Assembly (NCBI RefSeq): GCF_016433145.1
Contig: NC_058132.1
Span: forward strand, 71,458,421-71,522,420
Source: Gracilinanus agilis
Taxonomy: Eukaryota
Length of the DNA stretch: 64,000 bases
Direction of reading: 5' to 3'
Shown here: positions 40,515 to 61,849 of the stretch, in pieces
How the letters are laid out: each line of letters starts with the position of its first letter
Numbering within the stretch: the stretch's first letter is position 1
Notes under the pieces: model-generated
Databases searched by the model: none
Seen by the model: the letters and a program-made list of their open reading frames with translations, nothing else
What the model was told of the DNA's origin: nothing
Translations under genes and position numbers: made by a program

Positions 40515-41009
40515 ATGTCCTGGTACGTTCTCTTGCTGTGGTTGGCCGTGGCCTGGGCTGGGGCCGAGGCCTGGCTCTGGACTGCGGCAGACCCGACGTC
40601 CGCGACTTCTGCTGTGGCGGGGCTGGGAGCGGCCGAGGCTCCGGATGGGCTATTCGCTGCCGGCGCCGCGGCCTACGCGCGTGGAGACTGGGCAGCCGTG
40701 GTGCTGCACATGGAGCGCGCACTGCGCTCCCGGGCCGCGCTTCGCGCCCTGCGCCTACGCTGCCGCTCGCAGTGCGCCGCCCAGCATCCTTGGGAGCCCC
40801 AGCTGGGGCCGGGTGGGGTACCTGAGACCGAGGCCGGCCGGGCCGCTGCCGCCCTGCAGGACGTGCACTTCTTCGGGAGGCTGCTGCGACGCGCCGCATG
40901 CCTCCGCGGTTGCCTGGGCCCGCCGGCCGCGCACACCCTCAGTGAGGAGCTGGAGCTCGAATTTCGCAAGCGGAGCCCCTACAACTACCTGCAAGTGGCC
41001 TACTTCAAG
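40515..41009 (+). CDS. P3H1: P3H1 exon 1 coding part
   Basis: MSWYVLLLWLAV...SPYNYLQVAYFK; donor AAG|gtgcgg. Confidence 0.93.
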
Positions 41010-44000
41010 GTGCGGCTACTGGGGGCTAAGCTGGGGGCCACGGTCAGGCCGAGGGGGAAGAAATTTCCCATCCCTTAGAGGGAGCTGTTCCAAAATGAAT
41101 GAGCCAAAGGTAGTGAGGATCTGGTCACTGGAGGTCTTCAAGGAAAGGCTGTCTAACTGTTTGGGATATCGTAGAGGGGGCTACTGCTGAGATACAGGCT
41201 GAACTCGCTGTCTCCAAACTTCTTTCCTACTCTGAAGTTCTGTGGTTTTAGCTGATGGGATCCCTCGTCCCTTCCAGGGTAGTCTAGGAAACTGGTCATA
41301 TCAGAGCCTGATAGGTGTTTTGAGGATGAAACCAAGTTCGAGCCAGCCTTACGCCTTTTAAGCTTGGAGGAGCATCTTTCTTCCCAGCTCCTCCCCCAAC
41401 CCATAGATCTGGCTGAGCCGGAAACTTTCCTTCTGATGGCTTTAACGCTAGTTTGGAGTCCATGGCATAAAGTCGCTACTCTTGGTTTCAGGCCAGTACC
41501 TCCCCCTAAGTTTCTCAGCCCCATCTCTTTGCAAGCCTAGAAGAGGAGACATAAGAACACTATCTTGCAGGCCTTTTCTTGATTGGAATCCTTTTCCTAC
41601 CAACTCCAGCGCCTCCCCTTTCAGGACTTGGAATGCCACGTAGCAAACAGGGGGCCCCAGACTCCTCCTTGCTGGGGACCCTCTCAAGTTTCTCAGCAAA
41701 GTTAAAATACAGTTAGAAATTACAGAGTACTGCTACCAGTTCTATTTCTGGGCCCTTGGTATGGTTTAGTTCTTTCACTGTTTGCTCCCACAGTTTTGAC
41801 TTCACTAGACCAGCCCTTTAGGGTTAATTCAGTAGTGCCAATCCTTCACTGTAGTTCTGTAGAACATATTAGTGGTTCTATGAGGAGAGAATAAAAAAAT
41901 AGCCAAGGTTTCTGGATCTACTTAAGAGCTAGCATTACTGCTGCTATGTTTTTCCAAAGTTCACCTTCAAAAAAGGTCTTTTAACTCAGCTTACAGATAA
42001 GTCAGAAAGAATCTGAACTCAGATGTCCATCTCCCCTCAACATTTACACTGAAAAATACCTTTCTTCTCCTGCCCCACCCCCCAGTCTGATGGAGAAAAT
42101 ACAAAGCTCCTCAAGTACACAGAATTCCTCTCCAAACTCACTTCTCAAAAGCCTAATGATATAACAATACAACTATATGGAGGAAGGATAGCTGCTTCAG
42201 GAGAGAGACATTTCCACGCACAAGAAGAGAGAGGCTCAAAGAAAATCAAATAAAAATCCATCATAATAGGATAGCTTCATTTCAGTTGCTCTAATAATAA
42301 AAACCGAATTTAGGTCGCCTCTTCACTTGACCCATAAGGAAACCAAGGCTTTAAGAATTTAAGGGGTTTTTTTTCCTCCCAAGTTCACCCCATTTGTTAG
42401 AGTGCCACTGTTCCTCATAGTTCCTTTGGGCCAGGGGCTGGTCAGAGTCAGCACACATTCTTAGAATGAAAGGTCTGGGCTCTGTTTGGCTAGAAAGGGT
42501 CTGAGGATTTCTGTTTACCATCAGCTGACCTTTTGGATTATAGTTGTTCATGCTTCTTGCTGTGTCCTGTAAAAGTAAAATTTGGGAGATGTCATCTAAA
42601 AGTATATATATTTTCTATGGACATGTGGAAATTATCAAACTACATTTCCCGTGGTCCAATGGGTTTCCGGTTCCGGTTCTTTGGGCGTGGGGACACCTAC
42701 GTCTCCACACAGAGAAGAGTTTATAATCTCCTGGGTTAGGCGGGAGTGCTCTCTTGGCCAGCAGACTCGGGAGGAGATGGGAGACAATAATGGCGCAGGT
42801 GGCAGTTTTGAATTCTTACAAGCGCGTGGTCTAATAACTTTATCAGCATGGCTTTAATTAAATTACTAATTTATATTATTATATCAGCCTTTATTATTTT
42901 TTATCCTTATAGTCCCCAACATGTCAATCAATCAGTTGGTCAATAAGCATTTACTAAGGGCACCACTAAGGTAAGTGTTGAGATTCAAAGAAAGACAAAA
43001 ACACAATCCCTACTTTAGAAGTTCATAGTCTAATAGGGAAGCCAACACAAATCTACGTATTTAGCATAAATGGGATTGTTTTAACCCTTTTTATTTTTTT
43101 TTAAACCCTTATCTTCTATCTTAGAATTCATCTTGTTTATTGGTTCCTAGGTAGAAGAGCAGTAGGGGCTAGGCAATGGGGTTAAGTAACATGCCAAGAG
43201 TCATAGAGCTGGGAAGTGTATGAGGCCAGATCTGAACCCAGGACCTCCTGCTTCTAGGCCTGGCTCTTAATTCACTGGAGTTACTTAGCTGCCTCCAAGG
43301 AAGGAAACCTGGGAAGCCAAGAGGAATGAGGAGGTGAGGAAATGAGGAGAGCATCCCGAGCTTGGCCAGTAATTGAGTGGATGCAGGTCAGAGTGTCCTA
43401 TGCATTTACAGGCTCACAGTATTTGATGGTACAATGGGTCAGGGAAGAAATCTTAGCAGACTTGGAAGGTAGGAAGAGTCAAAGTGTAAAGGGCTTCAAA
43501 TGCTGAGCAGAGCCCATATTCAACTCTGATGGCCAGAGGCAACCACTGGCATTTAAACAAGAAGTGACCTGCACAGACCTGTGCTCTTTGGCAGTCTAGG
43601 GGCTTGGAGGCAGGAAGTACCATCAGAAAGGAGGCTATCCAACTGACACAGACTTGAGAACTTCTTCCCTTTACTTCACTTCCAGATTAATAAACTGGAG
43701 AAAGCCGTAGCAGCTGCACACACCTTCTTTGTGGGGAACCCAGAACACTTAGAGATGCGACAGAACTTGGACTATTACCAGACAATGTCTGGAGTCAAGG
43801 AGGAGGACTTCAAGGACCTTGAGGCCAAACCCCACATGGTGAAACAAGGCTTCCAAGCCTTCCTTTCCCTGTGCCCTTTCTGTCCTGCCCACCTCTGTCA
43901 ACAGGGAAGGCCCACTACTCCTGAGAAGGTCTAAAGAACACGTGGTCTTCCTAAAATCCTTGTGCAGTTTTAAATTTGGAGATCTTCCCTTTTAGTTGCA

Positions 44001-47000
44001 TTAGCAACTACTTGAAAATAGCATCTCAAAGCCAATTTATTTCTGTTTGATATAGATGCTATCTATACTTTGACACACAGGACTCAGTTCTTATTTCAGG
44101 TCCTGTGTGGCTAAAGGGAAATGCTTCCCTCAGGCACTGGTATCCCGGGACAGCTAGAACTGAAGCCCCTGTCTGCAGTGAGAAAAGAACTCACTGCTCC
44201 CTACCAGACTGAGTAAAAGCTTGCAAACCAATAGCCCAAATCATAGTAGCTGATAAAATGTTTTCAGACTGCACAGGGACTTTCTGAAGATCCCACTTTC
44301 CATTTTGTAAAATGGAATATGGCTTTAGGCTAGTTACTGGATCTCCTGAGTCTCAATCTTATCATCTATAAAATGGAGCTAATGATGCCTGGTGTATTTT
44401 ATGTTACATCAAAGGCTCTTATGAGAGCTTTTTAAAAATAATTATCAATCAAGTCTTTATTATTCCTACTAATTTTCCAGCCAGGCACACTTCATTCATT
44501 TCATGAGCATTTGCTTAGACCCAAATCTATAGGGACAGGAGATTATGAACCTTGTAGCAGTGGCCAAAGGGGAAGGAATAGGCCTTCCTTAGTTCATGGC
44601 CTGGAGGGCTAAATCCCTTGTCCTTCCTCAAGCATGAGTTCCGGCTGGGTGTCCGGCTCTACTCTGAAGAACAGCCCCATGAAGCTGTGCCTCATTTGGA
44701 GGCAGCCCTGCAGGAGTATTTTATGGCAGATGAAGAGTGCCGTGCCCTCTGTGAGGGACCCTATGACTATGACGGCTACAACTACCTCGAATACAATGCT
44801 GACCTCTTCCAGTCCATCACAGGTATGCCCTGCTCTTCTCTTCTTAGGGGCATCCTCTCCTTATTTTTCCTCCAGAAAAGATTTGGTTGATACCTGAGTA
44901 GGGTCTGCCTCCTGGAATGATGCCAGTGCAGGCTGGGTAGGGATGGGGCTCTGGGCTGAGCCCCAACCTGGGGAGAGATAGAGGGCTTCCACTGTACTTG
45001 CTGGATGTAGCAGGATCCAACATTTGTAGCTCTCTGGTTCTCCAGACCAAGTACTGCCTCAGTGTCTGATGGCTTGCATCCAGCCTTTTAGACATTTGAC
45101 CATAGATTAAATTTGCTCGATTTTGTTATCTACTCCACAGCTTTCAGCCTCCCAGACTGATCTGATGTTCTTTCCCCTCTCCTGATTTCTTTCAGATCAT
45201 TATATCCAGGTGCTCAGTTGTAAACAGAGTTGTGTTACCGAGCTTGCCTCCCATCCTAGCCGAGAGAAGCCCTTTGAAGATTTCCTCCCATCACACTATA
45301 ATTATCTGCAGTTTGCCTACTACAACAGTAAGAACCATCTTCCTCCTTTGCCTCTCTCAGCTCTTCATTAATAATTTGATTTCTGGCTTGTAAATATAGC
45401 ATTCCCTGGGATGCTTGGGCATATTCTTTAGAGCATATAGATTATAGAGTTCTAAAATCTTACAGGTTCCACAGGATCTCAGAATTTATAACCAGAAAGC
45501 ACTTTAGAGATCATCTGGGAAACTTCATTTTACAGATAAGGAAACTGAGGCCTAGAGAAGTACTTACCCTAAGGTCACACAAGTAGGAAATCTCATAACC
45601 AGAATTTGATGTTCTAAATTTGATTACAAGGTTCTTTCCACCGTATCATATAACTGACATAGGAAGCCAGTACCAGCACCTCCTCAGCACTGGGAGGAGA
45701 AAGCCTGCACCAGGAGGGCTTTCCTGTAGTTCTTTCTTTAGCATCTTCTAATTAAGGCTTTCACGGAAATTAAAACAAAGCAAAGCAACCCCTAAGGGCC
45801 CAGAGTCTTTATAGGCAGGCCACAAAACAGACTCCAGACCTGCCCATTGTCCTGATGCCAGGGTTTTTGATGACTGTAAACTTCAGTAGACAGAACAGCT
45901 ATTACTTAACAACTCTTGAGAGCCTACTCTGTGTCCAGCCTAGCTTAAGGGCTAGCCTTCAAGAAACTCGGGGGGGGAGTGCAGCTGGGTAGCTCAGTGG
46001 ATTGAGAGCCAGGCCTAGAGACAGGAGGCCCTGGGTTCAAATCTGGCCTCAGATACTTCTCAGCCATGTGACCCTGGGCAAGTCACTTGACCCCCATTGC
46101 CTAGCCCTTATCACTCTTCTGCCTTGGAATTGGCTCCAGGATAGAAGGTAAGGGTTTAAAAAAAAAGAAACTCGGATTCTGGTGGGGGTGACTTAATATA
46201 TAACAATAATGACTTGTTGAGTTCCAAAGATCTCTGCCATACAATAGCCCTGCAAGGTAGATAGGGGAAGATCTCTGGGCTGAGGGTAAGTTAACAACCT
46301 ACCTTCTAGGTTTGGCGGGGCAGGAGGACATGCTTTGTCGATCAGAAAGCACTATGAATATGTGAGTAATAGTAGGAGTTATTATTGTTAGGAGTCCCAG
46401 GCTCTACTACTCATTAGCTCTGGTATTCTGGACATATGATTTCCCACCTCTGTCTGTCAGTCTCCCCATTTGTAAATGAGAGGATGGGTCTCCAAGGTCT
46501 CTTGCAGCTCTTAAAGAGCTATGAATCATCCTGTAGGAGGTACTGGATGGGATGGTTAACCCTGCAAAGGCATCAGGAGATTGAAGCCAGATGAGGAAAG
46601 GCTGGAGGAACTTGGGAAGGCTTCCTATGAAGAGTAAGACTTGAGCCATCAACTGGTCAAGAAGTGGGACTAGATCAAGGAAGAGGCTAAGGCCAGGAGA
46701 GATTTAGTAGTCATTGGTATCACGGGGAGAAGAGAAAGAGAATAGGGTTCATATGGGTGTCAGAGAGAAATGAAGGGAACCCAAAAGCAGGGAGGATGGG
46801 AGCCAAGATTAGAGTGGGGTCAGTCAGTCACAAACTTTTATTAAGCACTTACCATATGCGAGGTACTGTACTCAACATGGAATACAAATACTTGCCCTCA
46901 AGGAGCTTATGTGCTAAGGGGAGAAGACAGTACAGAAGAAGCTGAAGTGGGGAGAAGGAGGCTTCTGACTTGGGGCATGGCAGAAGAACTCTGAAGTGCA

Positions 47001-50000
47001 GCCCGGAGAGGGATGGAAGCATGACTGGTCTGGGCACTTCCTTTGATGGGAGTCCAGTGTCCCTGAAACCAAGAGAGGAGAAGATGTTGAGAAAGTTGGG
47101 GGCCCATTAGGATGGGATAAACAAGAGGATAAGGACAGAAAAATCCTTGATTGGGCAGTTAGTATCAATGGCCTTGGAAGGAGAGATTTCAGGGTTGTGC
47201 TAGAGGCGTTAGCCCTAAAGGGGTTAAGGACTGAGCTGGTGGGAAAGAAGTAAAGGCAATAAGTATAGATTATTTTTTCGAGAAGTTTGTCAGTAAGGGG
47301 AGAAGTGAAATGGAATCCTAGCTTGAGAAGGTACCAGAGTTAAGAGAACACTTTTTTCTTTTAGACTTGGGGACACCAAAGCATGTTTGATGGCAGGACT
47401 TAGTGGAGAGGAGACTAGAAATGCAAGAGAGCAGGAATGACCAATGGGGCAGATTCTGGAGATAGAAAGAGGGAATGAATTTAAGGAATTAGCAGGCTGG
47501 ACTTGGACACAAGAAGACATGGTCTCCAATCTTGCCTTTAACACTTGCTGTATGACCTTGGGCAGGGAATCTAATCTCTGCCTCACTTTCTTCCTCTATA
47601 AAATGAGAAGAGTTAGGCTGGAGGGTCTATAAGTTCCCTTCCAGTAGTTAGTCCTGTGACTGGGCGGGGGAAAAGGAGGAGGACAGGTGGAGAGAGAGAG
47701 AGAGGTTTAAGGAGGAGAACAGGCCGGCCAGCAGCAATTTCACAAGAAGCCAGGTGAGTGCCCGCTTCCACCACAGAGAGAGGCCGAGCAACGGTGGCTG
47801 TGTTGGAAGCGGGCACTCACCTGGCTTCTTGTGAAATTGCTGCTGGCCGGCCTGTTCTCCCCAGCCCGGATCTGGGGGGCTGGGAGGGTCAGGTGGCCTC
47901 TGTGTGTGGGCACCGAAGGACAGAAGCCAGCCCCTGCCCTCGAGGAGCTCTGGGGCGAAGGGGGGAGCTTTGGGGAGGCTCATCAGGAGGCAGCCCCCGG
48001 CGCCTGTAGGGACACGCTGACGGGGAGAAACGCCAGGCTCTGCACTTTGTCCTTTGTTGTTTGGGACAAGGAACCTGGCGTGGCGAGCCCATGAACTGTC
48101 AGGGGGACCCCCTGGTGGGGCCCCCCAGTAACATCTCCTAAGGAAACCAGGCCCAAGCCCTGGCTCTGGTCTTACTGGCCGTGCAATCGTGTTCTAGGCC
48201 TTTGCCTCGAGCCTCCATTTCTTCCTCCGTAAAATGGAGAAAATACTTGCTTCACCTGGCTCATGCCTGGGGAGGAGAAAGCCCTTTGCACGGGGCCGTC
48301 CTCTCCCCTCACAGCTGGCTCGGGGGTCTGTGTTTTCTGTGAGCAGGACACCAGTGCCCCGACAAGTGAGCTAAAGGGGTTAACAAGGAGGCCAGGCGGA
48401 CAGCCATCGACCGACCCAGCAGGCCTCGCTTGCCCATCTGCCTGGGCCCCGGGCCCGGCGGACGGTTAGGCCTGAGGCGGGGCTCCCTGGAAGGCTGGGG
48501 GGTCCTCCTAGGCAGCTGTTTTTCTCTTTTCAGTTGGGAATTATACCCAGGCCATCGAATGTGCCAAGACCTACCTGCTCTTCTTTCCCAACGATGAGGT
48601 GATGCAGCAGAATGTGGCCTATTACACGGCTATGCTGGGAGAGGAGCAGGCTCAGCTCCTGAGCCCCCGCGAGGTGAGTGGCGGCCCTTCGCCCTGGTGT
48701 CCCCGGGGCTTACGGGATCCGGACCAGGCCCAGAGGTGGGGGGAGCCCGGCTCCCGAGGATGCCTGCGCTAGGTCATCCTTCTGAGAGTAAAAGGGCCTG
48801 GCAACAAGCTGGTCCCACCCAACCTAGGAGAGAATCTACCACAGCTTAGCCCCCAGAGGGTCATCCGGCCTCTGCGTGAAGAGGATGCTCCGCTCCCTCT
48901 CAAGGAGGGCGTCCTGCCGCCAGGCTTCAGCTTGCCTCTCAGCGGCTTTCATTTCTGCCCTTTAGGTCCAAACAGAATGTTTCCGATCCCTCATTTATGC
49001 AGTGAAACCCCCTTAAGTCTTCTCTTCTCCAAGCTGCATGCCCTTTGACATGGCAGTGCCCGAGAGGGCCAGCCCCGGGCCAGGCAGAAGAGGAGGGCGT
49101 CCTGGCAGAACGTGGGGCCAGACAGCTGGAAAAAGCTCAGGACAGAGGAGCCTCCCTTCCTTTGGGAAAGAGGCCAGGCCACCCCGGAGACAGATTCGGC
49201 ACCCCAAAACGGGCTGAACGCGACCATTCTCCTCCTCTTCTCGCTCGGTGCTCTGTGCACAGGCTTCCTTTTCTTTCTCTTCCCCCTTCCCCTCGGCGGC
49301 ATTGTGGGGCGTCCGGCCCTTCTGCTCTTCTCCCCCAACCCAAAAGACATTTCCGGACGTCGGCCGCTCTGCCCTTTGTGTCCGAGTTGTAGCCTCCTGA
49401 GCCCACTGAGCCTAACCAAGAATTCCTTCTGCGGGATCAGTCAGGAGGTCATCCAGCCTCTCCCACTCTCGCCCAAGGCTGCTTGTTTCACTTACGGACA
49501 CCTTGAACTGTTAAGAAGTTTTTAAAAATGAAGCCAAGATTTGCTTCTTTGCACTTCTGCCTGCTGCTACCAGTTCTACCCTCTGTGGCCAAGCAGGGCA
49601 CTTTGAATCCTTCTTGCACATAAAAGCCTTTCCGTAGTTGAAGACAGCCATCATTTGGTCCGAAGCCCTTCAAGGCTTAAATGGCAGGCTCCTGAAAAAG
49701 GAGGGCACTCCTAATAAAGGCTGATGATGGTGTGTGCCGATTCTAATTATACAGGCTTTAAAAATGAAGGGGAGAGGAAGGGAACTGCTTATTTAAATCC
49801 CCCAATCTGCATAGAAAATACCACACTCTGGGAAGAATAGCACTAAGAGGCCGGCCAGAAGTTCAGAGGACACCAAATCCAAATAGGCACACTTGCACAG
49901 AGTACGGCGGGCAAGCAAGAGGCATTAACAAGGAGGAGGCCAATCTGACCACAGGCGTTATGGCCTCATGGCTAGACATCTGGCTTCTGGAGAGAGGAAA

Positions 50001-53000
50001 ACAGATTAAAATCCTACCTCCGACTCCTGGCTGTGAGACCTGGGCAGGGCATTTGCTCTCAGTGTCCCAAGCCCCTTTGGAAGTGGCAGGGGCGCTATCC
50101 CTTAGCATTGGAGGGAAAGTTCCTCTCCGGGACCTCTCTACCCTGAGGAAATCACAGGTCTAGGTTTTTGGCTGTTTTTAAGTCTCTTGGAAATGTGGCG
50201 AGCAGAGACCCATAATTAGAGGGATGGTATACCATGTTCGGAAGAAAGGATCAGATGAGTGGGGTGCAAAGTAGCACTGTAAATTAGATGAAATATTCAT
50301 GTAAGGAAATCTAGGAACTAGAACAGGGCTGCAGGTGAAGAGAGTATTTGGATGAACACCAGTAGTGGTAGAAATAGGTGCAGTATTATCATCCAAGTTG
50401 TATTATAGCCCACCGAGTCAGAAAGGGAAATAGATGCAGTGATTGTGAAACAGATCGTAAGGCCGGCATAGAAACCGGATGTAATAGGGATGTAGGACTT
50501 CAGTTATCTGGTCATTTGTTGGTGTTATCTCTCTGCCTAAAGCAGAAGAGCTAATAATTTGTTATTTTTTTAAACCCTTATCTTCCATCTTGGAATCAAT
50601 ACTATGTATTGGTTCCAAAGCAGAAAAGTGGTACAGGCTAGGCAATGGCGGTTAAGTGAACTTGCCAAGGGTCACACAGCTAGGAAGTGTCTTGAGTCCA
50701 GATTTGAACCCAGGACCTCTTATCTCTAGGCCTGGCTCTGTCCATTGAACCACCGAGCTGCTCCTGAAGCTAATAATTTCTTAACTTGCCTTAATGATAA
50801 TTTTATTCTTCAAATGGGAGAGAAATCAGTAACGAAATTCTCTATGTGATTTGATTCATACCAACGAGATGACTGAGATGGAAGTGATGAGAACATTGGG
50901 AAAAATAAAGGAACAATTCTGACCAAGAACAAAAGAGGGAATTTAAATTTTAAAATTAGAGTCAGCTGTCTATGCACAATGAGTTCACCAAACAACTTCA
51001 ATTACAAAAAGACATGCAAGAGTTGAAGCATCTGATAGGTAATAAAAGACAACAGATCAACCCAGAATGAGCCAAGACTAGCCAGGAAGGCTGAGGACAA
51101 AAGGAGCCTTACTTCTGTTGGATAAAGAGAAGGCAGGTGGGACCATGATGACACCAATCAAGGATAGAATTGCTCAATTTATTTTGCTTCTGTTTGCCCA
51201 AGAGAATAATTTCTGGAAACAAAAATGGCAAATAACAAATGGATACCCAAGATAAGGAGATAATAAGGGAATTGTTGATGAGTTCAATTTACTATCTGTT
51301 CTGGAAGGATTTGTCCTTGGGTACTTCCCTTGGTAGTGGCATGTGGGATGGCTGAGACCTTGTCAGTGGTCTTTGAAAAATCATGGTGAAGGAGCCCTGC
51401 CACAGGACTAGAGAATTCAAGAAGGGGAAAAAAATAAGAGTTTGTACATTCTGGGCCAGGAAGCTTGACTCAATTCCTAGAAAAATTCTAGAACAGATTC
51501 TTTTTTTTTTTAAACCCTTGTACTTCGGTGTATTGTCTCATAGGTGGAAGATTGGTAAGGGTGGGCAATGGGGGTCAAGTGACTTGCCCAGGGTCACACA
51601 GCTGGGAAATGGCTGAGGCCGGGTTTGAACCTAGAACCTCCTGTCTCTAGGCCTGACTCTCACTCCACTGAGCTACCCAGCTGCCCTAGAACAGATTCTT
51701 AAAGGAATATCTCTCTAGAAGAGGAAGCAGAGATTGCCAGAAGCTAGCACGGTTTCCTCAAGAATATGTCTTGCCAAGCTAATTGTGTTTCTCTTTTTGA
51801 TGGAGCTATCAAACTGATCGATCGATAGAAAGTCGTAAGACTATTTGACAAAATGTTTTTGTCTAGGGGAAAAGGAAGAGAAAGATGGTTGGACAAGGAC
51901 ATAGTCTTAGAACTGACTGAATGACGAGGCCTTAGTACCAGTCTTAAATAATGGAGTGTGTACTCGGAAAGAAGTTGCTGGAGGTGAGCCCCTGTAGAGC
52001 TGTGCTCTCAAATGTCATCGTCAGTGATTTGGACCAGGGCCTAGCTGGGGAACGTGAGCCTGGGGATGACAGCCGGTGTGCAGTCAGGCTTTGACAGGCT
52101 GGAATGCTGGGCTGGGTGGGCTCAACATCATCAGAAGCCCCTGAAAAGGAACTCCCTCGACCAATGCAGGCTGGCATCTTCTCTGCAGCTTATAGTCCTA
52201 GAGAGATCCCTGAGGGCACAGAGAGAGTCAGTGATTTGCTCATGGTCACACAGCCAGGCTGTATAAGATGGGGCAGCTAATGAAGGCCCACTGTCCACTG
52301 TTGCCTCTAACACAGTAAATTTAATAGAGAAAAAATGTAAATAAACATTGGACTTTAGTCTAAAACTTAGGTTCAAAAAACAGTTTTCCAAGTACATTTG
52401 ACTAGATGGTAGTTCTGAAAAAGATCTGGGGATTTTAGTGGACTGCAAGCTTCCTATGAAAGACAGCCAGGAAAGCACGCATGTGCTAAGGTCGCCCTAC
52501 ATGGAAGTGTGACGTCTAGGACGAGCCGTGATCGTTCTGCTGGCCTGGCCCCAGCTACAGTGTCTATTTGATGCTGGGTGCCACACTTCAGACCGGAGGG
52601 CTCCTGGAGCAGACGGCCAAGAGAAGGAAGGCTCTGGGTTCGAACCGTGTGAAGATCCGTGGAAGAGCTGCCATGTGGAGGGGGGAGCAGGTGCCCGGGG
52701 CCCCTCACAGCTCTGAGATTCCGGGATTCTCTAGGCTAACGCCCTTCCCTTCCTTTCCTTGAGTCCTGTCCATCTGTTTGAAGGCCCACCAGGAAGCCTC
52801 CTCTGCTTCCCCCGTGGGCCTTGGGGTATTTTGGGGCTCCTCCTTACCCGCAGTGTGAGCCCCAGAAGGGCACGAGCCGCCTTATCTAAGATGGCTGTCT
52901 TCTCCCCCAGCACCGAGCAGGATTTTGCAGGCGACCAGTAATTAGGCGCTGCTTTTCCTTGTCTTTCCTCAGAATGCCCGGGCCTACCGCCACCGGAGCC

Positions 53001-56000
53001 TGCTGGAGAAGGAGCTGCTCTTCTTCGCTTATGACGTATTTGGAATTCCCTTTGTGGACCCAGTAAGTGGGAGCGCAGGCTGGCCTGTAGGGGATTCAGG
53101 AGAAGGGGGGGAGCCCAGGCCACAAAGGGGGGAGCCCAGGCCGAGAGGGGGGGAGCCCAGGCTGAGAAGGGGGAGCCCAGGCTGAGAAGGGGGGAGCCCA
53201 GGCTGAGAAGGTGGGAAGGGGCCTGGGGATGGACGGCAGCAGGAAGCCCCATCTTAGTTCTCCTCAGCAAGCCGAGATGCGGGAGGCGCTCCGAGCGGGC
53301 CGGGCCTGACCCTTCCTCCCTGTTGTAGGACGCCTGGACCCCTGAGGAAGTGATCCCTAAGAGGCTCCAAGAAAAGCAGAAGTGAGTGCCTGGGCCGGAG
53401 TCTCGGGCTGGCTCTGGGCCCTGCCAGATGGGGGTCCCAGCCGAGGATGGACGGGCCGCCGGGGGGACGGTCTGGGGATGTTGGGGCGGCATCTTAGTCC
53501 GGTGACTCGTCCTGACAGGACAGAGCGGGAGACGGCGGTGCGCATTTCTCAAGAGATCGGAAACCTCATGAAGGAGATCGAAACCCTCGTGGAAGAGAAG
53601 ACGAAGGAGGCCGTGGACGTGAGTCTGCTGGCTCGGGAAGGTGAGAGCAGGCCTGGGGCCGGTCCCGGAGCTCTGCCCAGAGGGGTGCGTGTGCCCTCAG
53701 CCCCCCCGGGGAGGCGCCTCATGAATCCTCTCCAGACGTCCGGCGAGGCCTCGTTAGCACAGGGAGCCTGGGAGGGAGGAGACGGGCCTTTAGGTACCAC
53801 GGCGAGGCCGACGCTCGGCTGGGCCTGTCCCCGGGGGGGTTGCTGGCTTCAGCCTGGGCCCTTTCTGCTTCCTGGCTGCGGGAGGCCCTGCCGGAGAACC
53901 GGCACGAGGCTCGGACCCTGCCTCCATCTGGTGATCCATCTGGTGACGAGGAGGTGGCCACGCTGGGACAGCCCAGCCCCGGGGAGGACAGGCCTGAGAG
54001 AGCCGCTCCCCTCCTCCCCCTGCAGGCGGCCCCCTGCTCTACGAAGGCATCAGCCTGACCATGAACTCCAGGGTGCTGAACGGCTCCCAGCGGGTGCTGC
54101 TGGACGGAGTCATCTCGGACGACGAGTGCCGGGAGCTGCAGAGACTCACCAACGTGAGTGGAGGCTCCGGGCTGCGGGCCAGGAGGGCGGCGAGCCGTAG
54201 GGGGAGGCTCTCTGGCTCCGGCTGGCTCCGGCCCTCACTGCTTCATCACTCCTAACCCTTGCTTCTGCCTCAGAATCAGCCCTGGGGGTCTGTACCAGGC
54301 AGTGGGGTTAAGTGACTCACCCAGGGTCACGGCTACATGCGTCTGAGGCCAGATTTGAACCCGGGACTTCCCTTCTCCGGGCCTGGCTCCCTCCCTACCA
54401 AGCCACCTCACCTGCCCTGGGCTGTGCGGTTCTGGACAAGCTGTCCCTTCCCGGCCTCGGGCTCCTCGCCTCTTCAAGGGGGAGAGTCCCGGTGGGCCCC
54501 TTGGCGAGGCCAGCCTCCATCACAGAGACCCGTGACCAGCACTGCGGTTCTGCTTTCTAGGCAGCGGCAATAGCGGGGGACGGCTACCGAGGCCACACGT
54601 CCCCCCACACCAAAAGCGAGAAGTTCTATGGTGTCACCGTCTTCAAAGCCCTCAAGGTGAGTGTGTGGGAGCCCCCACCCCCCGGGCCCCGCATTTAGGG
54701 GATTGTGGGCATCACACACTGTCAAGATGGGGGGGCCGGGCTGGGACTCCCACCATGAGGAGAGGCTTGGGCCGAGGGGAGCAGGGGAGCCACGGCAAAG
54801 GAGAGGATGGGGGGAAGGGCGGCGTGCCGGGCACCCACCCCCGGGCCGTGCCCCCCACTCAGCTGGGCCAGGAGGGCAAAGTGCCCCTGCAGAGCGCCCG
54901 CCTCTACTACAACGTGACGGAGAAGGTGCGCCGCGTCATGGAGTCCTACTTCCGGCTGGACACGCCGCTCTACTTCTCCTACTCCCACCTGGTGTGCCGC
55001 ACGGCCATTGAAGGTAGGCCCTGGCCCTTCCCCATGGGGTCTCTCCCCTTCTCCTTCCCCTTCCCCCCAGAGGTCCTTCCCCTTCTTCCCCCTCTTCCCT
55101 TCTTCCCCTTCTTCCTCTTCTCCTTCTTCCTCTTCCCCTTCTCCTTCCTCTCCTCCCCCCTCTTCCCCTTCCGCTTTTTCTTCTTCCCCTTCCCTGCGGG
55201 GGTCCTGCGCCTGGCAGAGCCCCTGCCAGCGTCTGTGCTTGGCTTCCAGACGCTCAGGAGGACAGGACAGACAGCAGCCACCCCGTGCACGCCGACAACT
55301 GCATCCTGAACGCCGAGGCCCTGGCCTGTGCCAAGGAGCCCCCCGCCTACACCTTCCGCGACTACAGGTATAGACGGGCGTCCAGGCTGGGGCCGGGGCG
55401 CCACAGGGCAGGGGTCACGCCGCTTGTGTCTTTCCAGCGCTATCCTGTACCTCAACGGGGACTTTGATGGTGGAAACTTTTATTTCACTGAACTGGATGC
55501 CAAGACGGTGACGGTGAGTGGCCGGCCCTGGGGCTGAGTGCGGGGGGCCAGAGGGCACCTCGAACACCCCACGACACACACACACACACACACACACACG
55601 TGCCAGCCCCGGAGCCCCGGTCTCAGGGGTCAGTGGGTGCCCTGAGCTGGCACCTCTGCCCGCCGCCCCCCGAGGTTTGTCCCGGCCTTCTCCTGCTCCC
55701 AGAGCCCCTCCCCCGCCTGGGCACCCTCCCTCGTCTCCTCTCTCCAGGCCGAGGTGCAGCCGCAGTGTGGCCGGGCCGTGGGCTTCACCTCGGGGGCAGA
55801 GAACCCGCACGGCGTGAGGGCCGTCACCAGGGGGCAGCGCTGCGCCATCGCCCTGTGGTTCACCCTGGACCCCCGGCACAGCGAGCGGGTGAGTGCGGGG
55901 TGGGGCGGGCCTGGCTCAGAAGAGCCTCCCCTTCGGGCCTCCTCCCTTCCCCGGCCCTCAGCTCTGGGGCCCCTCGGTCAGGGCCGGCCCTCCCAGGCCC

Positions 56001-56295
56001 TCCTCTGCGGGCCCTCGGAGCTCTTGGGGTCCCCGTCTCACCGGGCCAGGCCCCCCGACATCGTCAGCCCCAGCACAGCCAGGAGGGGGACGCCCCCCCT
56101 TGGGATCCCCTCAACGGCCCCAGGGCCAGAGACTCCCAGCCAGGGCCCCGGGCCTCCCCCCACGTGGCCCTTCTGTCCTCACAGGACCGGGTGCAGGCGG
56201 ACGACCTGGTGAAGATGCTCTTCAGCCCCGAAGAAGCGGAGCTGCCCAGGGAGCCGCCCGCCGAGGCCACGGCCGGGCCCAGGGACGAGCTGTGA
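40515..56295 (+). CDS. P3H1: Prolyl 3-hydroxylase 1 (leprecan), 15 exons, 731 aa
   Basis: The exons sum to 2196 nt. The protein has a signal peptide, four CXXXC motifs (CRSQC, CLRGC, CRALC, CKQSC), the 2OG-Fe(II) dioxygenase residues H-A-D, NPHG and GQR, and a C-terminal RDEL. Confidence 0.98.
43085..43292 (-). mobile_element. SINE-1-type copy in P3H1 intron 1
   Basis: Core and tail are recognisable. Confidence 0.8.
43686..43838 (+). CDS. P3H1: P3H1 exon 2
   Basis: ttccag|INKLEKAV...AKPHM|gtgaaa; 153 nt. Confidence 0.95.
44633..44822 (+). CDS. P3H1: P3H1 exon 3
   Basis: cttcctcaag|HEFRLGV...FQSIT|gtatgc; 190 nt. Confidence 0.95.
45196..45327 (+). CDS. P3H1: P3H1 exon 4
   Basis: tttcag|DHYIQVL...QFAYYN|gtaaga; 132 nt. 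Confidence 0.95.
45972..46164 (+). mobile_element. SINE-1-type copy with TSD
   Basis: 11-bp TSD aagaaactcgg at 45961-45971 and 46165-46175. Confidence 0.88.
46530..47420 (-). mobile_element. L2 fragments in P3H1 intron 4
   Basis: ttattaagcacttaccatatgcgaggtactgt L2 3' end plus purine-rich body. Confidence 0.6.
47714..47860. repeat. Perfect 57-bp inverted repeat with a 33-nt spacer
   Basis: 47714-47770 is the exact reverse complement of 47804-47860. The ORF track shows the same peptide (EAGTHLASCEIAAGRPVL) on both strands. Confidence 0.97.
48534..48673 (+). CDS. P3H1: P3H1 exon 5
   Basis: ttttcag|GNYTQAIEC...LSPRE|gtgagt; 140 nt. Confidence 0.95.
50565..50765 (-). mobile_element. SINE-1-type copy
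   Basis: Full length; flanked by a repeated agctaataattt. Confidence 0.85.
51503..51686 (-). mobile_element. Very young SINE-1-type copy with TSD
   Basis: TSD ctagaacagattctt at 51488-51502 and 51686-51700. Confidence 0.92.
52973..53062 (+). CDS. P3H1: P3H1 exon 6
   Basis: cctcag|NARAYRHRSLLEKELLFFAYDVFGIPFVDP|gtaagt; 90 nt. Confidence 0.95.
53105..53209 (+). repeat. G-rich minisatellite, 5 copies of about 21 bp (G5-7 AGCCCAGGCTGAGAA)
   Basis: Read directly in P3H1 intron 6. Confidence 0.92.
53329..53381 (+). CDS. P3H1: P3H1 exon 7
   Basis: ttgtag|DAWTPEEVIPKRLQEKQK|gtgagt; 53 nt. Confidence 0.95.
53519..53640 (+). CDS. P3H1: P3H1 exon 8
   Basis: gacag|TERETAVRISQEIG...LLARE|gtgaga; 122 nt. 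Confidence 0.95.
54026..54153 (+). CDS. P3H1: P3H1 exon 9
   Basis: ctgcag|GGPLLYEG...QRLTN|gtgagt; 128 nt. Confidence 0.95.
54252..54417 (-). mobile_element. GC-shifted SINE-1-type copy in P3H1 intron 9
   Basis: ggggttaagtgactcacccagggtcac...tctgaggccagatttgaacccggg. Confidence 0.75.
54561..54656 (+). CDS. P3H1: P3H1 exon 10
   Basis: ttctag|AAAIAGDGY...FKALK|gtgagt; 96 nt. Confidence 0.95.
54863..55013 (+). CDS. P3H1: P3H1 exon 11
   Basis: ctcag|LGQEGKVP...CRTAIE|gtaggc; 151 nt. Confidence 0.95.
55020..55196. repeat. Polypyrimidine (CCTT/CTT) tract filling most of P3H1 intron 11
   Basis: About 175 nt of almost pure C/T. Confidence 0.9.
55250..55367 (+). CDS. P3H1: P3H1 exon 12 (HxD iron ligands)
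   Basis: ttccag|...SHPVHADNC...FRDY|gtatag; 118 nt. Confidence 0.95.
55438..55513 (+). CDS. P3H1: P3H1 exon 13
   Basis: tttccag|SAILYLNGDFDGGNFYF...KTVT|gtgagt; 76 nt; the preceding intron is only 70 nt. Confidence 0.95.
55748..55888 (+). CDS. P3H1: P3H1 exon 14 (distal His and 2OG-binding Arg)
   Basis: ctccag|AEVQPQC...NPHG...GQRC...HSER|gtgagt; 141 nt. Confidence 0.95.
56185..56295 (+). CDS. P3H1: P3H1 exon 15 coding part
   Basis: tcacag|DRVQADDLVKMLFSPEE...GPRDEL*. Confidence 0.95.
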   Translation, partial: DRVQADDLVKMLFSPEEAELPREPPAEATAGPRDEL

Positions 56296-58832: not shown

Positions 58833-58964
58833 ATAAATACAGTTTTAAACATTTTTCAAATTTTTGAGTTCCAAATTTTCTCCCTCCCTCCTCTCTTCTT
58901 CTCTCCCTGAGATAGTAAGCAATCCAATGTAGATTTTACATGCACATTCATGTCAACTATTATT

Positions 58965-59146
58965 ATTATTTTTAAACTCTTAACTTCTGCATATTGGCTC
59001 CTTGGTGGAATAGTGGTAAGGGTGGGCAATGGGGGTCAAGTGACTTGCCCAGGGTCACACAGCTGGGAAATATCTGAGGCCAGATTTGAACCTAGGACCT
59101 CCCGTCTCTAGGCCTGACTCAATCCACTGAGCTACTCAGCTGCCCC
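58965..59146 (-). mobile_element. SINE-1-type copy
   Basis: Near full length with little divergence. Confidence 0.85.
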
Positions 59147-59419
59147 TCTAAATATTATTATTTTTAACAAAACTCTAGCATTTGTTTGGGTTGGTAGAAC
59201 ATTTTACTTTTCAAAATGCTTTCATTCCCATTACCTTTTGATCCTGGAAATGTGCTTGAGGCATAATTTCCAGCTGAGCAGCCTAGGCTGGGGAGAGAAG
59301 AGATTCTAGATTAGAACTCACCTCCTAACTCCCTAACTCTAGGTCCTGAGTTCTTACCGTGACCCTGGCCTAGATTCAGCATTGAGGGTGTCCTAAAGAA
59401 AAGAATTAGATGGTGAAGA

Positions 59420-59604
59420 ATGTAAGGCATGGAGTCAGGAAGACCTAAATTCAAATTTGGCCTCAGATACTTACTAGGCAAGCCTCAGTTTCCTCTTCTG
59501 TAAAACAAGCTGGAGAAAGAAATGGCAAACCCTCTGGTATCTTAGCCAAGAAAACACCAAAGGGGGTCCCAAAGAGTTGCAGGACAGAAACTGAACAACA
59601 AAGA
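59420..59604 (+). mobile_element. MAR1-type SINE, internally deleted
   Basis: gagaaagaaatggcaaaccctctggtatcttagccaagaaa tail. Confidence 0.7.
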
Positions 59605-59609
59605 CAGTT

Positions 59610-61640
59610 CAAGATAGAGCCAAGAAAGTAGAGAAAGGAAGCTTTGTTATGAGTGCCTGTCTGCAAACTCCTCTAAGCCAAACAAGAAAATGCCCTTAAT
59701 CAAACCCTGATGGGGAAATCCCCCCAAAGCCACAGGGAGCCCTTGGTGCAGCCCACCTTGGCAAGGGGAGACAGACAAGGAGATCTGCAGATATTGGGGA
59801 CAGGGTTGAGGTGGAAGTATGCCACACAGACCACTCCAGCATTCAGGGAGAGGCCAGGCACCAGGGCTAGTGGAGACTTTAGAGCATCTGCTGTCTGCTG
59901 TCATGGGGAAAGGTGTGAACTAGCGGCTTTCTTGTCACTTCCTCCCTGGTTCTGGATCCCAGATCCAGAGCAGAATGAAAAGGGGCTAGAGAGACCCTGT
60001 GAGGTATATGGAGAAAGAAGGAAGCAGCAGTGTGACCCCAACTTCAGGCACAGAGCAGGTTTGAGGCATCTAGCCTAAGCTAGGAAAATAACAAAAGCAG
60101 GAATCTTACATCAAAGGGATCCCTACAACTCTGCCACTGAACCAGTGATACCTTCCCCTTGGTCAATAGGCTCAGAGTCCAGCAGAGTCTCAGACCGAAA
60201 CCCAAGTCAATAACTTGCAGAGATCAAACTGGCAGGGAGGGGTGAGATGGGAGACCACTAGAAAGCAGCAATCAGATTTTGCCCTGGGTCACACCACTTT
60301 GGGTCTGAAAGCTTGCAATCCCCCTGTCTTAGATCCCACAATAACAACACTCAATACTACAAGAAAAGAGCAACAGGACTAACCCAGATCTTCCCACCAG
60401 AAGTACTCCCAGCCCTAACAGTAGCCTTGGCAAAGGTTTTCAAGTTTGCATGCCCAAACTATCTTCAAGCTGCTTGTGAGCACCGCCACCCCCCCCCCAA
60501 TATTACTGCAGAGTGGATGGAGGAGGTGCTCACTTTGTGCAGCTAGACAGAGGAGTGGAGTAAGCAAAAAATGTCTTTGGGTGCTCATAAGAGGGGGAAT
60601 GGAGCAGCCCCCCTCCCTGTGCCAGCTGGGCACACATGCCAGTACTTTACCAGTGCTGCCTAACAGCAAGTCTGATTTCAGAAAGTAGTCTGGAAGAATG
60701 AGCAAACTATTCCAGAGAAAGAACTATTGGAGTTGGATGGATGCAGATCAAAGCATACTATCTTTCACATCAGCGTATTCATAATTTTATTTTGGGGTTT
60801 TGGTTTTGTAGGAGTTGACTCTTACAACAAGGACCAAGTGGAAGTGTTTGCATGATAATAAAAAAAATGGGCAAACCAAAAATGTATTCCATCAAAAGGA
60901 GCTATTGTGGTATCCAGGATGCTCAGACAAAACCACAGAAGGGAATGACCCTAAAATGTCTGCAAACAGGCAGCTGGGTGGCTCAGTGCATTGAGAGCCA
61001 GGCCTAGAGACGGGAGGTCCTAGGTTCAAATCCGGCCTCAGACACTTCCCAGTTGTGTGACCTTGGGCAAGTCACTTGACCCCCATTGCCTACCCTTACC
61101 AACTCTTCCACCTATAAGTCAATACACAGAAGTTAAGGGTTTAAAATAAAAAATAAATAAATAAATAAAAATAAAATGTCTCGGGGGCAGCTGGGTAGCT
61201 CAGTGGAGTGAGAGTCAGGCCTAGAGACAGGAGGTCCTAGGTTCAAACCCGGCCTCAGCCACTTCCCAGCTGTGTGACCCCTGGGCAAGTCACTTGACCC
61301 CCATTGCCCACCCTTACCAATCTTCCACCTATGAGACAATACACCGAAGTACAAGGGTTTAATAAAATAAATAAATAAATAAATAAAGTGTCTGCAAGCA
61401 AAGCCTCAGAGTAAAAGTCAGTGAGGGCACAATTCCTAGAAGAGATGAAGCAAGAGTTTTTTGTTTTGTTTTGTTTTTCAAACTTTAAAATTTGTTTTAG
61501 AAATGGAATAAGAGCACTTGAGAGGGGGAAATGGGGAAAAAATGAGAACTATGGACGGAAGAATTAGAAAGGAAATTAATACCTTGGCCTAAGAGGTATA
61601 AAACCTTGCCCAAGAAACAAACTCTCTGAAAATAAGAATG
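59610..61640 (+). mobile_element. Older L1 5'UTR and ORF1 start, with a nested L1 3' fragment (about 60708-60868) and two SINEs
   Basis: The ORF1-like sequence atgagcaaac...aaagcctcagagtaaaag...ctagaagagatgaagcaagag rejoins across the insertions. aatgagcaaac/aatgggcaaac flank the inner L1 piece. Confidence 0.55.
60968..61386 (+). mobile_element. Head-to-tail pair of young SINE-1-type copies (60968-61180 and 61183-61386)
   Basis: Two full bodies with (AAAT)n tails and different subfamily 3' ends. Confidence 0.92.
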
Positions 61641-61642
61641 GA

Positions 61643-61845
61643 GGGGACAGCTGAATGGTTCAGTGGATTGAGAGCCAGACCTAGAGATGAGAGGTCCTCA
61701 GTTCAAATCTGGCCTCAGACCCTGCCTAACTGTGTGACCCTGGGCAAGTCACTTAACCTCCATTGCCTACCCTTACCACTCTTCTGCCTTGGAACCAATA
61801 CACAGTAGTGATTCCAAGATGGAAGGTAAGGGTTTAAAAAAAAAC
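61643..61845 (+). mobile_element. SINE-1-type copy
   Basis: Full length with an A tail. Confidence 0.85.
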
Positions 61846-61849
61846 ATCA

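Follow-up and report, generated by a model that had tools for sequence, protein, structure and literature searches.

A long inverted repeat in intron 4 of P3H1

Intron 4 of P3H1 in the 64-kb stretch of opossum DNA analysed here (the window, meaning the whole stretch) carries a long and almost perfect hairpin, and we consider it probable, at roughly 0.7, that this hairpin is a young scar of error-prone replication or repair in the opossum lineage, as opposed to an evolved device. The inverted repeat itself is a genuine sequence observation: a repeat search of the window returned two arms that are complementary at 62 of 63 positions (98%) with a spacing of 21 nt, and base-by-base comparison of the arms resolved these into 57 perfect pairs, one mismatch and five further pairs (CACAG/CTGTG), that is, the perfect 57-bp stem, single mismatch, five additional pairs and loop of about 21 nt given in a preliminary description of this DNA. 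The features that bear on its origin and possible effects are as follows.

45197-45327, plus strand: P3H1 exon 4 (tblastn and translation)
47645-47753, plus strand: hypothetical 109-nt cryptic exon, from a conserved acceptor to a new donor
47709-47723: left junction zone, purine-rich and ending in GGAGAACAGG, with a possible microhomology of 6-10 nt
47714-47776: arm 1, 63 nt, read as a derived inverted copy of arm 2
47751-47759, plus strand: consensus 5' splice-site motif CAGGTGAGT, within the stem (arm 1)
47771 (C) versus 47803 (T): sole mismatch between the arms, from the base-by-base comparison
47772-47776: inner microhomology CACAG, pairing with CTGTG at 47798-47802
47777-47797: loop, 21 nt, ancestral sequence
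47798-47860: arm 2, 63 nt, read as the ancestral template
47815-47823, minus strand: mirrored CAGGTGAGT, in the ancestral arm 2
47819-47843: conserved core in arm 2, also present, inverted, in arm 1
48534-48676, plus strand: P3H1 exon 5 (tblastn and translation)

The host gene was identified by tblastn and translation as P3H1, the gene for collagen prolyl 3-hydroxylase; it matches P3H1 of Gracilinanus agilis without a difference, and its span of 15,781 bp compares with 17,997 bp in Monodelphis. The hairpin lies inside intron 4, with exon 5 beginning 674 nt downstream (about 670 nt had been claimed). The "CpG-rich zone" that was said to begin here stands only as a rise in GC content, from 0.43-0.50 to 0.61-0.64; the CpG observed/expected ratio rises no higher than 0.34-0.59, below the usual island criteria. 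No relatives of the 111-aa open reading frame spanning the hairpin were found in the protein collection searched, the exon-5 read-through frame had matches only in eutherian and sauropsid contigs, and a metagenome scan with the conserved 22-mer gave zero matches.

Folding, a step suggested in the preliminary description, gave a very stable structure on both strands. As RNA, the plus strand folds at -146 kcal/mol (z -18.5, with 0 of 200 shuffles equal to it) and the minus strand at -141.7 kcal/mol; the DNA fold is -89.9 kcal/mol (z -19.1). The arm sequence occurs in just two places in the window, namely arm 1 and arm 2, and this hairpin is the only tight, long inverted repeat across the 64 kb.

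Arm 2 is the template and arm 1 the copy

We compared the intron with its orthologues in koala, Dromiciops and Antechinus, all members of Australidelphia and representing three orders, the window being the sole didelphid in the comparison; with intron identity of about 70% between the window and these outgroups, the parent state is read from distant relatives and not from a sister species. Intron alignments were anchored separately on the left and on the right, and these were used in place of a whole-intron MAFFT alignment, which forced the hairpin onto the start of the segment missing from the window and was discarded.

The alignment of marsupial introns that had been proposed as a check gave a clear result: the arm sequence is present as a single copy in all three outgroups, in the orientation of arm 2 and colinear with the loop and right flank (E of 5e-12 in koala; also in Dromiciops and Antechinus). 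Arm 1 matches that single copy in reverse only (koala L004 10288-10232, Dromiciops L003 10377-10332). The loop is orthologous to the outgroup DNA directly upstream of the arm-2 orthologue, with the common motif AGCAAC(G/A)GTG, and reads as pre-existing genomic DNA, neither new nor adapter. On these alignments, arm 1 is the derived inverted copy and arm 2 the template.

The one difference between the arms points in the same direction. In both alignments, koala, Dromiciops and Antechinus each have G at the column of 47803; on this evidence G is the ancestral base, its complement survives as the C at 47771 of arm 1, and arm 2 changed from G to T after it had been copied. The "active homogenisation" that had been offered to account for the identity of the arms is unnecessary. 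The structure also appears to have been gained suddenly, as the value of -146 kcal/mol in the window compares with -52 kcal/mol for the orthologous region of koala (z +1.7) and -38.5 kcal/mol for that of Antechinus (z +2.2). An earlier proto-hairpin is ruled out, with both orthologues folding no better than shuffled sequence.

The shape of the element, long terminal inverted repeats around a short centre, is what a MITE or another foldback transposon inserted in the intron would also show, and it is the only feature that such an insertion explains. Against it, there is no target-site duplication, in agreement with the preliminary description, which had likewise argued that the hairpin is not a MITE, and the bases outside the arms do not repeat; further, no additional copy exists in the 64-kb window or in 88 kb of orthologous loci, and one arm plus the loop has a single-copy orthologue in each of three other marsupials. 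A transposon origin is refuted by this orthology of arm 2 and loop, and we see practically no probability left for it; an adapter palindrome was rejected on the orthology of arm 2, the loop and the flanks.

Within arm 2, the core at 47819-47843 is strongly conserved: 21 of its 25 columns are invariant among the window, koala, Dromiciops and Antechinus, against a background of 35%, and only one 25-mer of intron 4 ranks above it (top 0.4%). In cat, where intron 4 is only 1.27 kb long, neither the arm nor the conserved block has a homologue.

The junctions of arm 1

The left flank is orthologous to the outgroups as far as 47713-47718. Past this point the outgroups carry about 1.75-2 kb of unique DNA that is absent from the window, colinear among all three at 67-72% identity, and the orthologue of the DNA that neighbours arm 1 on its left lies, in the outgroups, about 1.75 kb farther upstream. 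That is, the ~1.75-kb gap in the window falls exactly at arm 1, all comparisons of this junction being with Australidelphian outgroups. No TIR, LTR or obvious TSD was found in the ~1.75-kb outgroup segment.

Apparent short homologies are found at both ends of arm 1. On the left, the junction stretch is common to the left flank and to the outer end of arm 2 read as its reverse complement; the left flank of Antechinus runs on as GAGGAGCAACAGG, the outer end of arm 2 in Dromiciops carries CCTGTTCT, and all three outgroups have an A(G/A)AACAGG 8-mer upstream of the loop (AGAACAGG in koala and Dromiciops, AAAACAGG in Antechinus), which in koala sits 12 nt before CATAG/CCTAG. On the right, the outgroups have CATAG or CCTAG at the position aligned to CACAG, just upstream of the loop. 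It is likely that CACAG was the primer of a fold-back or the return point of a template switch, and the first ~10 nt and last 5 nt of arm 1 may be older microhomology as opposed to copied DNA. These junction microhomologies lie in low-complexity, purine-rich DNA aligned at about 70% identity, and the breakpoints are approximate.

Taken together, single-copy outgroups, the position of arm 1 at a ~1.75-kb junction and the microhomologies form what is, as read from the alignments, the signature of fold-back synthesis or template switching, and the recent template-switch origin claimed previously is supported by the first two of these, arm 1 being an apparently derived inverted copy that sits at a rearrangement junction. 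The event may be pictured as follows. The ancestral intron would have contained the loop and arm 2 alone. A DNA 3' end terminating in the complement of CACAG would have folded back onto CTGTG (or, equivalently, a nascent strand would have switched template), about 50-58 nt of arm 2 would then have been copied in inverted orientation, and a short purine-rich microhomology with AACAGG at its end would have let the extended end join the left flank again. Between that flank and the loop some 1.75 kb of intron would have disappeared, probably as part of this event, the single event being our inference. The product would have been a perfect inverted repeat (63/63), in which a later, single G>T change in arm 2 produced the mismatch.

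At a rate of ~2.4e-9 per site per year, one difference in 63 nt would put the age of the hairpin near 3.3 My (0.08-18 My), an estimate that is accompanied by a split date of 80 My. Steps of this kind have precedents: a sharp drop in folding energy has been described for template-switch hairpins (PMC10710096), and microhomology-primed fold-back synthesis leads to templated inverted duplications at breaks (PMC11724301; also PMC2943611 and PMC5728401).

One event, two events or an artefact

Alternatively, the inverted copy and the ~1.75-kb loss could be two separate and unrelated events, with an older 1.75-kb indel followed by a local template switch that replaced ~12 nt beside the junction. The length difference could then be an old insertion in the Australidelphian ancestor instead of a deletion in the didelphid, or else an old didelphid deletion between AACAGG repeats. 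The 8-mer found upstream of the loop in the outgroups, together with an AACAGG-like motif at the left breakpoint, is compatible with such a history, a local four-point switch from the AACAGG motif yields the observed product, and local template switches are the common class (PMC10710096). However, both events would have to share one breakpoint to within a few bases, and the 1.75-kb segment is without transposon hallmarks. We regard two events as very unlikely.

A different possibility is that the inverted copy, and perhaps the absence of the 1.75 kb too, arose in the assembly, either through a faulty consensus or through a read that was a fold-back chimera. Of 43 words sampled around the hairpin, about 8-9 are missing from the only public run that contains this DNA, and nearly all words farther out are present in it, which would fit an artefact; yet missing 31-mers are also expected from a de Bruijn graph when an inverted repeat exceeds k. 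Moreover, the loop and the two flanks have genomic orthologues and are not adapter, and the assembly runs on colinearly, leftward as far as exon 4 and rightward as far as exon 5. At the one base that distinguishes the arms, the putative copy keeps the ancestral state, and apparent microhomology is found at both junctions, as in biological template switches. An artefact thus appears highly improbable, and we favor the fold-back or template-switch origin outlined above.

A splice-donor motif created by the copy

The preliminary description had placed a consensus donor on each strand. The motif CAGGTGAGT is indeed present on both strands, at 47751-47759 (plus) and 47815-47823 (minus) and nowhere else in the window; the two occurrences are, however, a single 9-mer mirrored by the duplication and not independent of each other. 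The outgroup sequence on the donor strand is CAGGTCTGT, which is not the consensus motif, and the outgroups have GCACAGACCTGG where the window has GCACTCACCTGG (the mirror motif in arm 2). The minus-strand motif in arm 2 is, by this comparison, neither conserved nor ancestral, and the sense-strand CAGGTGAGT is missing from the outgroups because arm 1 is missing there; the sense-strand donor motif was, by the same reading, created by the duplication.

The acceptor of the hypothetical 109-nt exon, TCCCTTCCAG, is conserved in the outgroups. Inclusion of this exon would shift the reading frame and, by translation, lead to a stop within exon 5; the arithmetic behind the frameshift claimed earlier is correct.

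Possible effects on P3H1

Once P3H1 is transcribed, a 63-bp duplex of the two arms should form in the pre-mRNA within seconds; intron 4 would then be a likely ADAR substrate, and the stem would hide the strong sense-strand 5' splice-site motif made by the copy. That is, the copy would have created a donor inside the very stem that hides it, and the new donor would therefore have been masked from birth. We expect no selected function of the hairpin, while a functional consequence of doubling the strongly conserved block of arm 2, which its conservation makes conceivable, is possible.

It is nonetheless worth considering that a hairpin of the same origin has since been co-opted, either as a source of miRNA-like or other hairpin-derived small RNAs expressed with P3H1 or as a gate of the new donor and the 109-nt exon. 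Both ideas, together with that of a first exon of an internal or antisense transcript, came from the preliminary description and are hypothetical here. New miRNAs are documented to have arisen from intronic template-switch hairpins (PMC10710096), the stem has high stability on either strand, and the hypothetical exon combines a conserved acceptor, purine-rich content, a perfect donor and a premature stop in exon 5. On the other hand, a stem of 63 bp departs widely from the pri-miRNA design of ~35 bp, and of the primate template-switch hairpins, which number more than 6,000, most never became genes (both PMC10710096). No Rfam family came near its threshold, the best match, to mir-1451, scoring 28.5 bits where the gathering score is 85 and the hits being sub-threshold generic hairpins only; the structure also seems to be no more than a few My in age, and conservation of the donor motif is lacking. 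We consider co-option unlikely. That the hairpin acts on P3H1, through lineage-specific small RNAs or as a structural switch that decides on the use of a 109-nt poison exon and its new 5' splice site, is likewise doubtful, indeed quite unlikely; in a variant of this reading, the inverted doubling of the conserved arm-2 block would have altered an intronic regulatory element. If the small-RNA or splice-switch reading were true, the hairpin would tune P3H1 output.

Relation to known systems

Inverted Alu pairs are an example of intronic inverted-repeat dsRNA that is edited by ADAR. The P3H1 hairpin resembles them in forming a long, near-perfect intramolecular duplex within a pre-mRNA intron and differs from them in that it does not consist of two transposon copies and is far shorter. 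FoSTeS/MMBIR rearrangements are usually described at the kb-to-Mb scale in disease. Common to these and the event proposed here would be serial, microhomology-mediated template switches that join a deletion to an inverted duplication, whereas the present case is a 60-nt inversion-duplication that a wild species carries in fixed form, or at any rate in its assembly; templated insertions by MMBIR are described in PMC8421209. Pri-miRNAs and mirtrons are similar to the hairpin in being intronic stem-loops with a loop above 10 nt. Against a design of a ~35-bp stem and a loop of at least 10 nt, the P3H1 hairpin has a 63-bp stem, about twice the preferred length, and a 21-nt loop; its ends are not at splice sites, and it has no Rfam match.

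The closest likeness is to template-switch mutation hairpins (the four-point model of Loytynoja and Goldman; Monttinen et al. 2023, PMC10710096), in which adjacent sequence is copied inverted in one lineage and a perfect stem results in one step, with a sharp energy drop, within an intron of an expressed host gene and with the hairpin missing in outgroups. The inverted fragment is the reverse complement of nearby sequence over 63 nt, where at least 15 nt defines the class, and the distant outgroups (~70% intron identity) hold the source and not the copy. The 63-bp stem is longer than most reported, inverted fragments of template-switch cases being 28 and up to 83 bases (PMC10710096), and the simple two-jump model has no counterpart to the coincident 1.75-kb length difference. 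In this latter respect, if the difference is a deletion in the window, the hairpin would be similar to the fold-back templated insertions that double-strand breaks give rise to (SD-MMEJ, Pol theta end joining and yeast fold-back inversions), which combine a deletion with an inverted copy of break-adjacent DNA (PMC11724301, PMC2943611, PMC5728401) and have a microhomology of a few bases at the fold-back point (for which CACAG/CTGTG is the candidate here) and at the rejoining point; experimental inserts are mostly 5-34 bp (PMC11724301), as opposed to ~50-58 nt here.

The mechanism, that is, the birth of a hairpin by template switching, is thus already known, and the P3H1 hairpin adds one case and raises no new question. 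As such, it would be a natural case, outside primates and rodents, of one replication or repair error giving rise to a long perfect RNA hairpin in an expressed gene, in which the sequence tells which arm was the template and which the copy, where the two junctions lie and roughly how old the hairpin is. It would also provide a strong splice donor that was born masked by the structure that created it, which illustrates why such events may be tolerated. The value of the hairpin may therefore lie in offering a dated case for template-switch catalogues and a marsupial candidate for dsRNA editing and splice-site occlusion.

A long hairpin in intron 4 of P3H1

An inverted-repeat search of the window placed the hairpin within intron 4 of P3H1 (collagen prolyl 3-hydroxylase), with a spacing of 21 nt between its arms:

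45327 (end of exon 4) to 48534 (start of exon 5), + strand: P3H1 intron 4, host of the hairpin
47714-47776, 63 nt: arm 1
47798-47860, 63 nt: arm 2

Base-by-base comparison of the arms gave 57 perfect pairs, then a mismatch (47771 C / 47803 T) and then 5 pairs, exactly as the preliminary description had it for this place. The folding check proposed there gave RNA energies of -146 kcal/mol (sense) and -141.7 kcal/mol (antisense), a DNA energy of -89.9 and z-scores of about -18 to -19, with no shuffle equally stable for RNA of either strand or for DNA. Neither further copies of the arm sequence in the window nor a second tight long inverted repeat within the 64 kb were found, and an Rfam search of the hairpin returned no family close to threshold. 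Several imperfect inverted repeats downstream of P3H1 (58900-62900; arms of 96-200 nt, 84-93% complementary, 0.8-1.9 kb apart) are probably oppositely oriented transposon copies.

The P3H1 exons in the window matched 727 of the 731 residues of the Gracilinanus agilis protein, the other four being a micro-exon beyond tblastn placement, and the coding span (40515-56295; 15,781 bp) is the same as the gene span recorded for G. agilis; that of Monodelphis exceeds it by 2.2 kb. The window accordingly represents a didelphid opossum, either G. agilis itself or a form that cannot be told apart from it. The window also contains two N runs (9196-9394, 199 bases, and 9481-9608, 128 bases). Arm 2 ends 674 nt before the start of exon 5 (about 670 nt had been estimated). 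The GC increase reported to begin at the hairpin is genuine, but the CpG observed/expected ratio there is no higher than 0.34-0.59; in the orthologous koala and Dromiciops DNA, GC is about 0.5 and the ratio mostly <0.3. This GC-rich zone (47600-49400; GC 0.6+, moderate CpG) is specific to the lineage of the window and could be the product of GC-biased gene conversion where recombination is active. Two 26-nt direct repeats flanking the hairpin (47580-47605 and 48211-48236; 85% identical, each with a TAAAATG end) resemble the cores of two MIR-type SINE copies.

Arm 1 as a derived inverted copy

Comparison with the orthologous loci of three marsupials, all Australidelphian (Antechinus flavipes, Dromiciops gliroides and koala; about 66-74% identity to the window across intron 4), a comparison that had been suggested earlier, revealed a single copy of the arm in each, in the orientation of arm 2. 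The left flank is colinear with all three outgroups as far as 47713-47718, and arm 2 with its right flank has a forward match at one place per outgroup:

Koala, 10223-10320, forward (E 5e-12): orthologue of arm 2 and right flank
Dromiciops, 10332-10413, forward: orthologue of arm 2 and right flank
Antechinus, 9859-9965, forward: orthologue of arm 2 and right flank

The loop is orthologous to the outgroup DNA directly upstream of these places (alignments A1 and A3). Because arm 2 and the loop have this forward orthology while arm 1 matches the outgroups only in reverse, at the arm-2 orthologue, the loop and arm 2 are ancestral and arm 1 is a derived inverted copy. Folding of the orthologous regions is unremarkable (z of +1.7 in koala and +2.2 in Antechinus). 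Between left flank and loop the outgroups hold about 1.75-2 kb of unique DNA, absent from the window, which is colinear among all three (67-72% identity) and in which no transposon hallmarks were found. Dromiciops also carries a SINE-like insertion of about 170 nt between the orthologues of loop and arm 2 (about 10165-10330 of its locus, L003), with related copies elsewhere in L003 and at 45981-46102 of the window.

Junctions, origin and age

The innermost stem pairs are formed by CACAG (47772-47776) and CTGTG (47798-47802). Because the corresponding outgroup position reads CATAG or CCTAG, the CACAG is probably ancestral and probably either primed the fold-back or marked the return point. On the outer side, arm 1 starts GGAGAACAGG and the left flank in Antechinus goes on as GAGGAGCAACAGG; an A(G/A)AACAGG 8-mer lies upstream of the loop in all three outgroups (AGAACAGG in koala, where it is 12 nt before CATAG, and in Dromiciops; AAAACAGG in Antechinus), and the Dromiciops arm-2 outer end carries the complement CCTGTTCT. 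Anatomically this is an inverted templated copy at a junction, bounded on either side by short matches, as fold-back priming or replicative template switching yields. The recent template-switch origin proposed earlier is supported by the single-copy outgroups and the inverted arm 1 at the junction. Template switching is known to make entire perfect stems in a single step; primates have >6,000 hairpins of this origin, and the miRNAs that arise from it show intronic enrichment (PMC10710096). Break-associated fold-back synthesis produces templated inverted duplications via microhomology (PMC11724301, PMC2943611, PMC5728401).

Since the 1.75-kb difference and the inverted copy have a common breakpoint, we favor one complex event in which about 1.75 kb would have been lost and 50-58 nt copied inverted; with outgroups that are all Australidelphian, the length difference may instead be a gain on their side. 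The junction motifs also allow a local template switch adjoining an older indel, although both changes would then have to fall at one breakpoint.

It is also possible to view the hairpin as an assembly artefact. In X1, the sole public sequencing run that contains this DNA, the sampled words present amount to 0.79 on 47560-48010 vs. 0.94 on 47400-48700 (about 8-9 of 43 sampled 31-mers missing on the former, nearly all words present in the wider 1.3 kb), and hence the missing words gather at the hairpin, as an artefact might have it. De Bruijn collapse at an inverted repeat exceeding k in length would be expected to leave such a pattern, although the pattern does not prove it and could also represent a true difference in the X1 sample. 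With loop and both flanks being orthologous genomic DNA, an assembly colinear to exon 4 and exon 5, a one-base arm difference whose ancestral state is retained in the copy, and microhomology at both junctions, we consider an artefact very improbable.

The inverted repeat was 63/63 at birth and arm 2 altered later, because all three outgroups have G at the mismatch column, where arm 2 has T and arm 1 retains the complementary C. One difference in 63 nt, an assumed raw intron divergence of about 30% and the 80-My split used for dating would give an age of about 3.3 My (Poisson range 0.08-18 My), a figure that would become a minimum if the arms underwent gene conversion.

Splice motifs, conserved core and consequences

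The donor motif described for each strand, CAGGTGAGT, does occur on the sense strand at 47751, with a mirror copy at 47815-47823, and nowhere else in the window, but the two are one motif, doubled because the arm was duplicated. The outgroups have GCACAGACCTGG vs. GCACTCACCTGG in the window, the latter being CAGGTCTGT on the antisense strand, and the motif is not ancestral; absent before arm 1, the sense-strand donor first arose with that arm and thus inside the stem from birth. The upstream acceptor TCCCTTCCAG, which we take to be the tail of a MIR-type SINE, is kept in the outgroups. Translation bore out the frameshift ascribed to the exon between acceptor and donor:

47645-47753, 109 nt: candidate exon; inclusion would lead to a frameshift and a stop within exon 5

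The arm-2 core at 47819-47843 has 21 of 25 columns invariant across four marsupials of four orders (window, koala, Dromiciops and Antechinus) and ranks second among intron 4 25-mers for conservation (top 0.4%; background 35%). This core, which may loosely resemble C/EBP or STAT-type sites, is now present in two mutually inverted copies; no counterpart could be detected in the cat intron, which is 1.27 kb long.

Given the established biology of ADAR and splicing, a 63-bp duplex is expected in the P3H1 transcript, where it should be edited and should hide the new donor. Co-option of the hairpin, either to supply small RNAs or to gate splicing, is the main rival to a neutral scar and seems unlikely. 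The stem is about twice the preferred pri-miRNA length, which speaks against the small-RNA version. Our preferred hypothesis, with a probability of roughly 0.72, is that the hairpin is a neutral scar with passive consequences, namely the duplex, its editing and the hidden donor.
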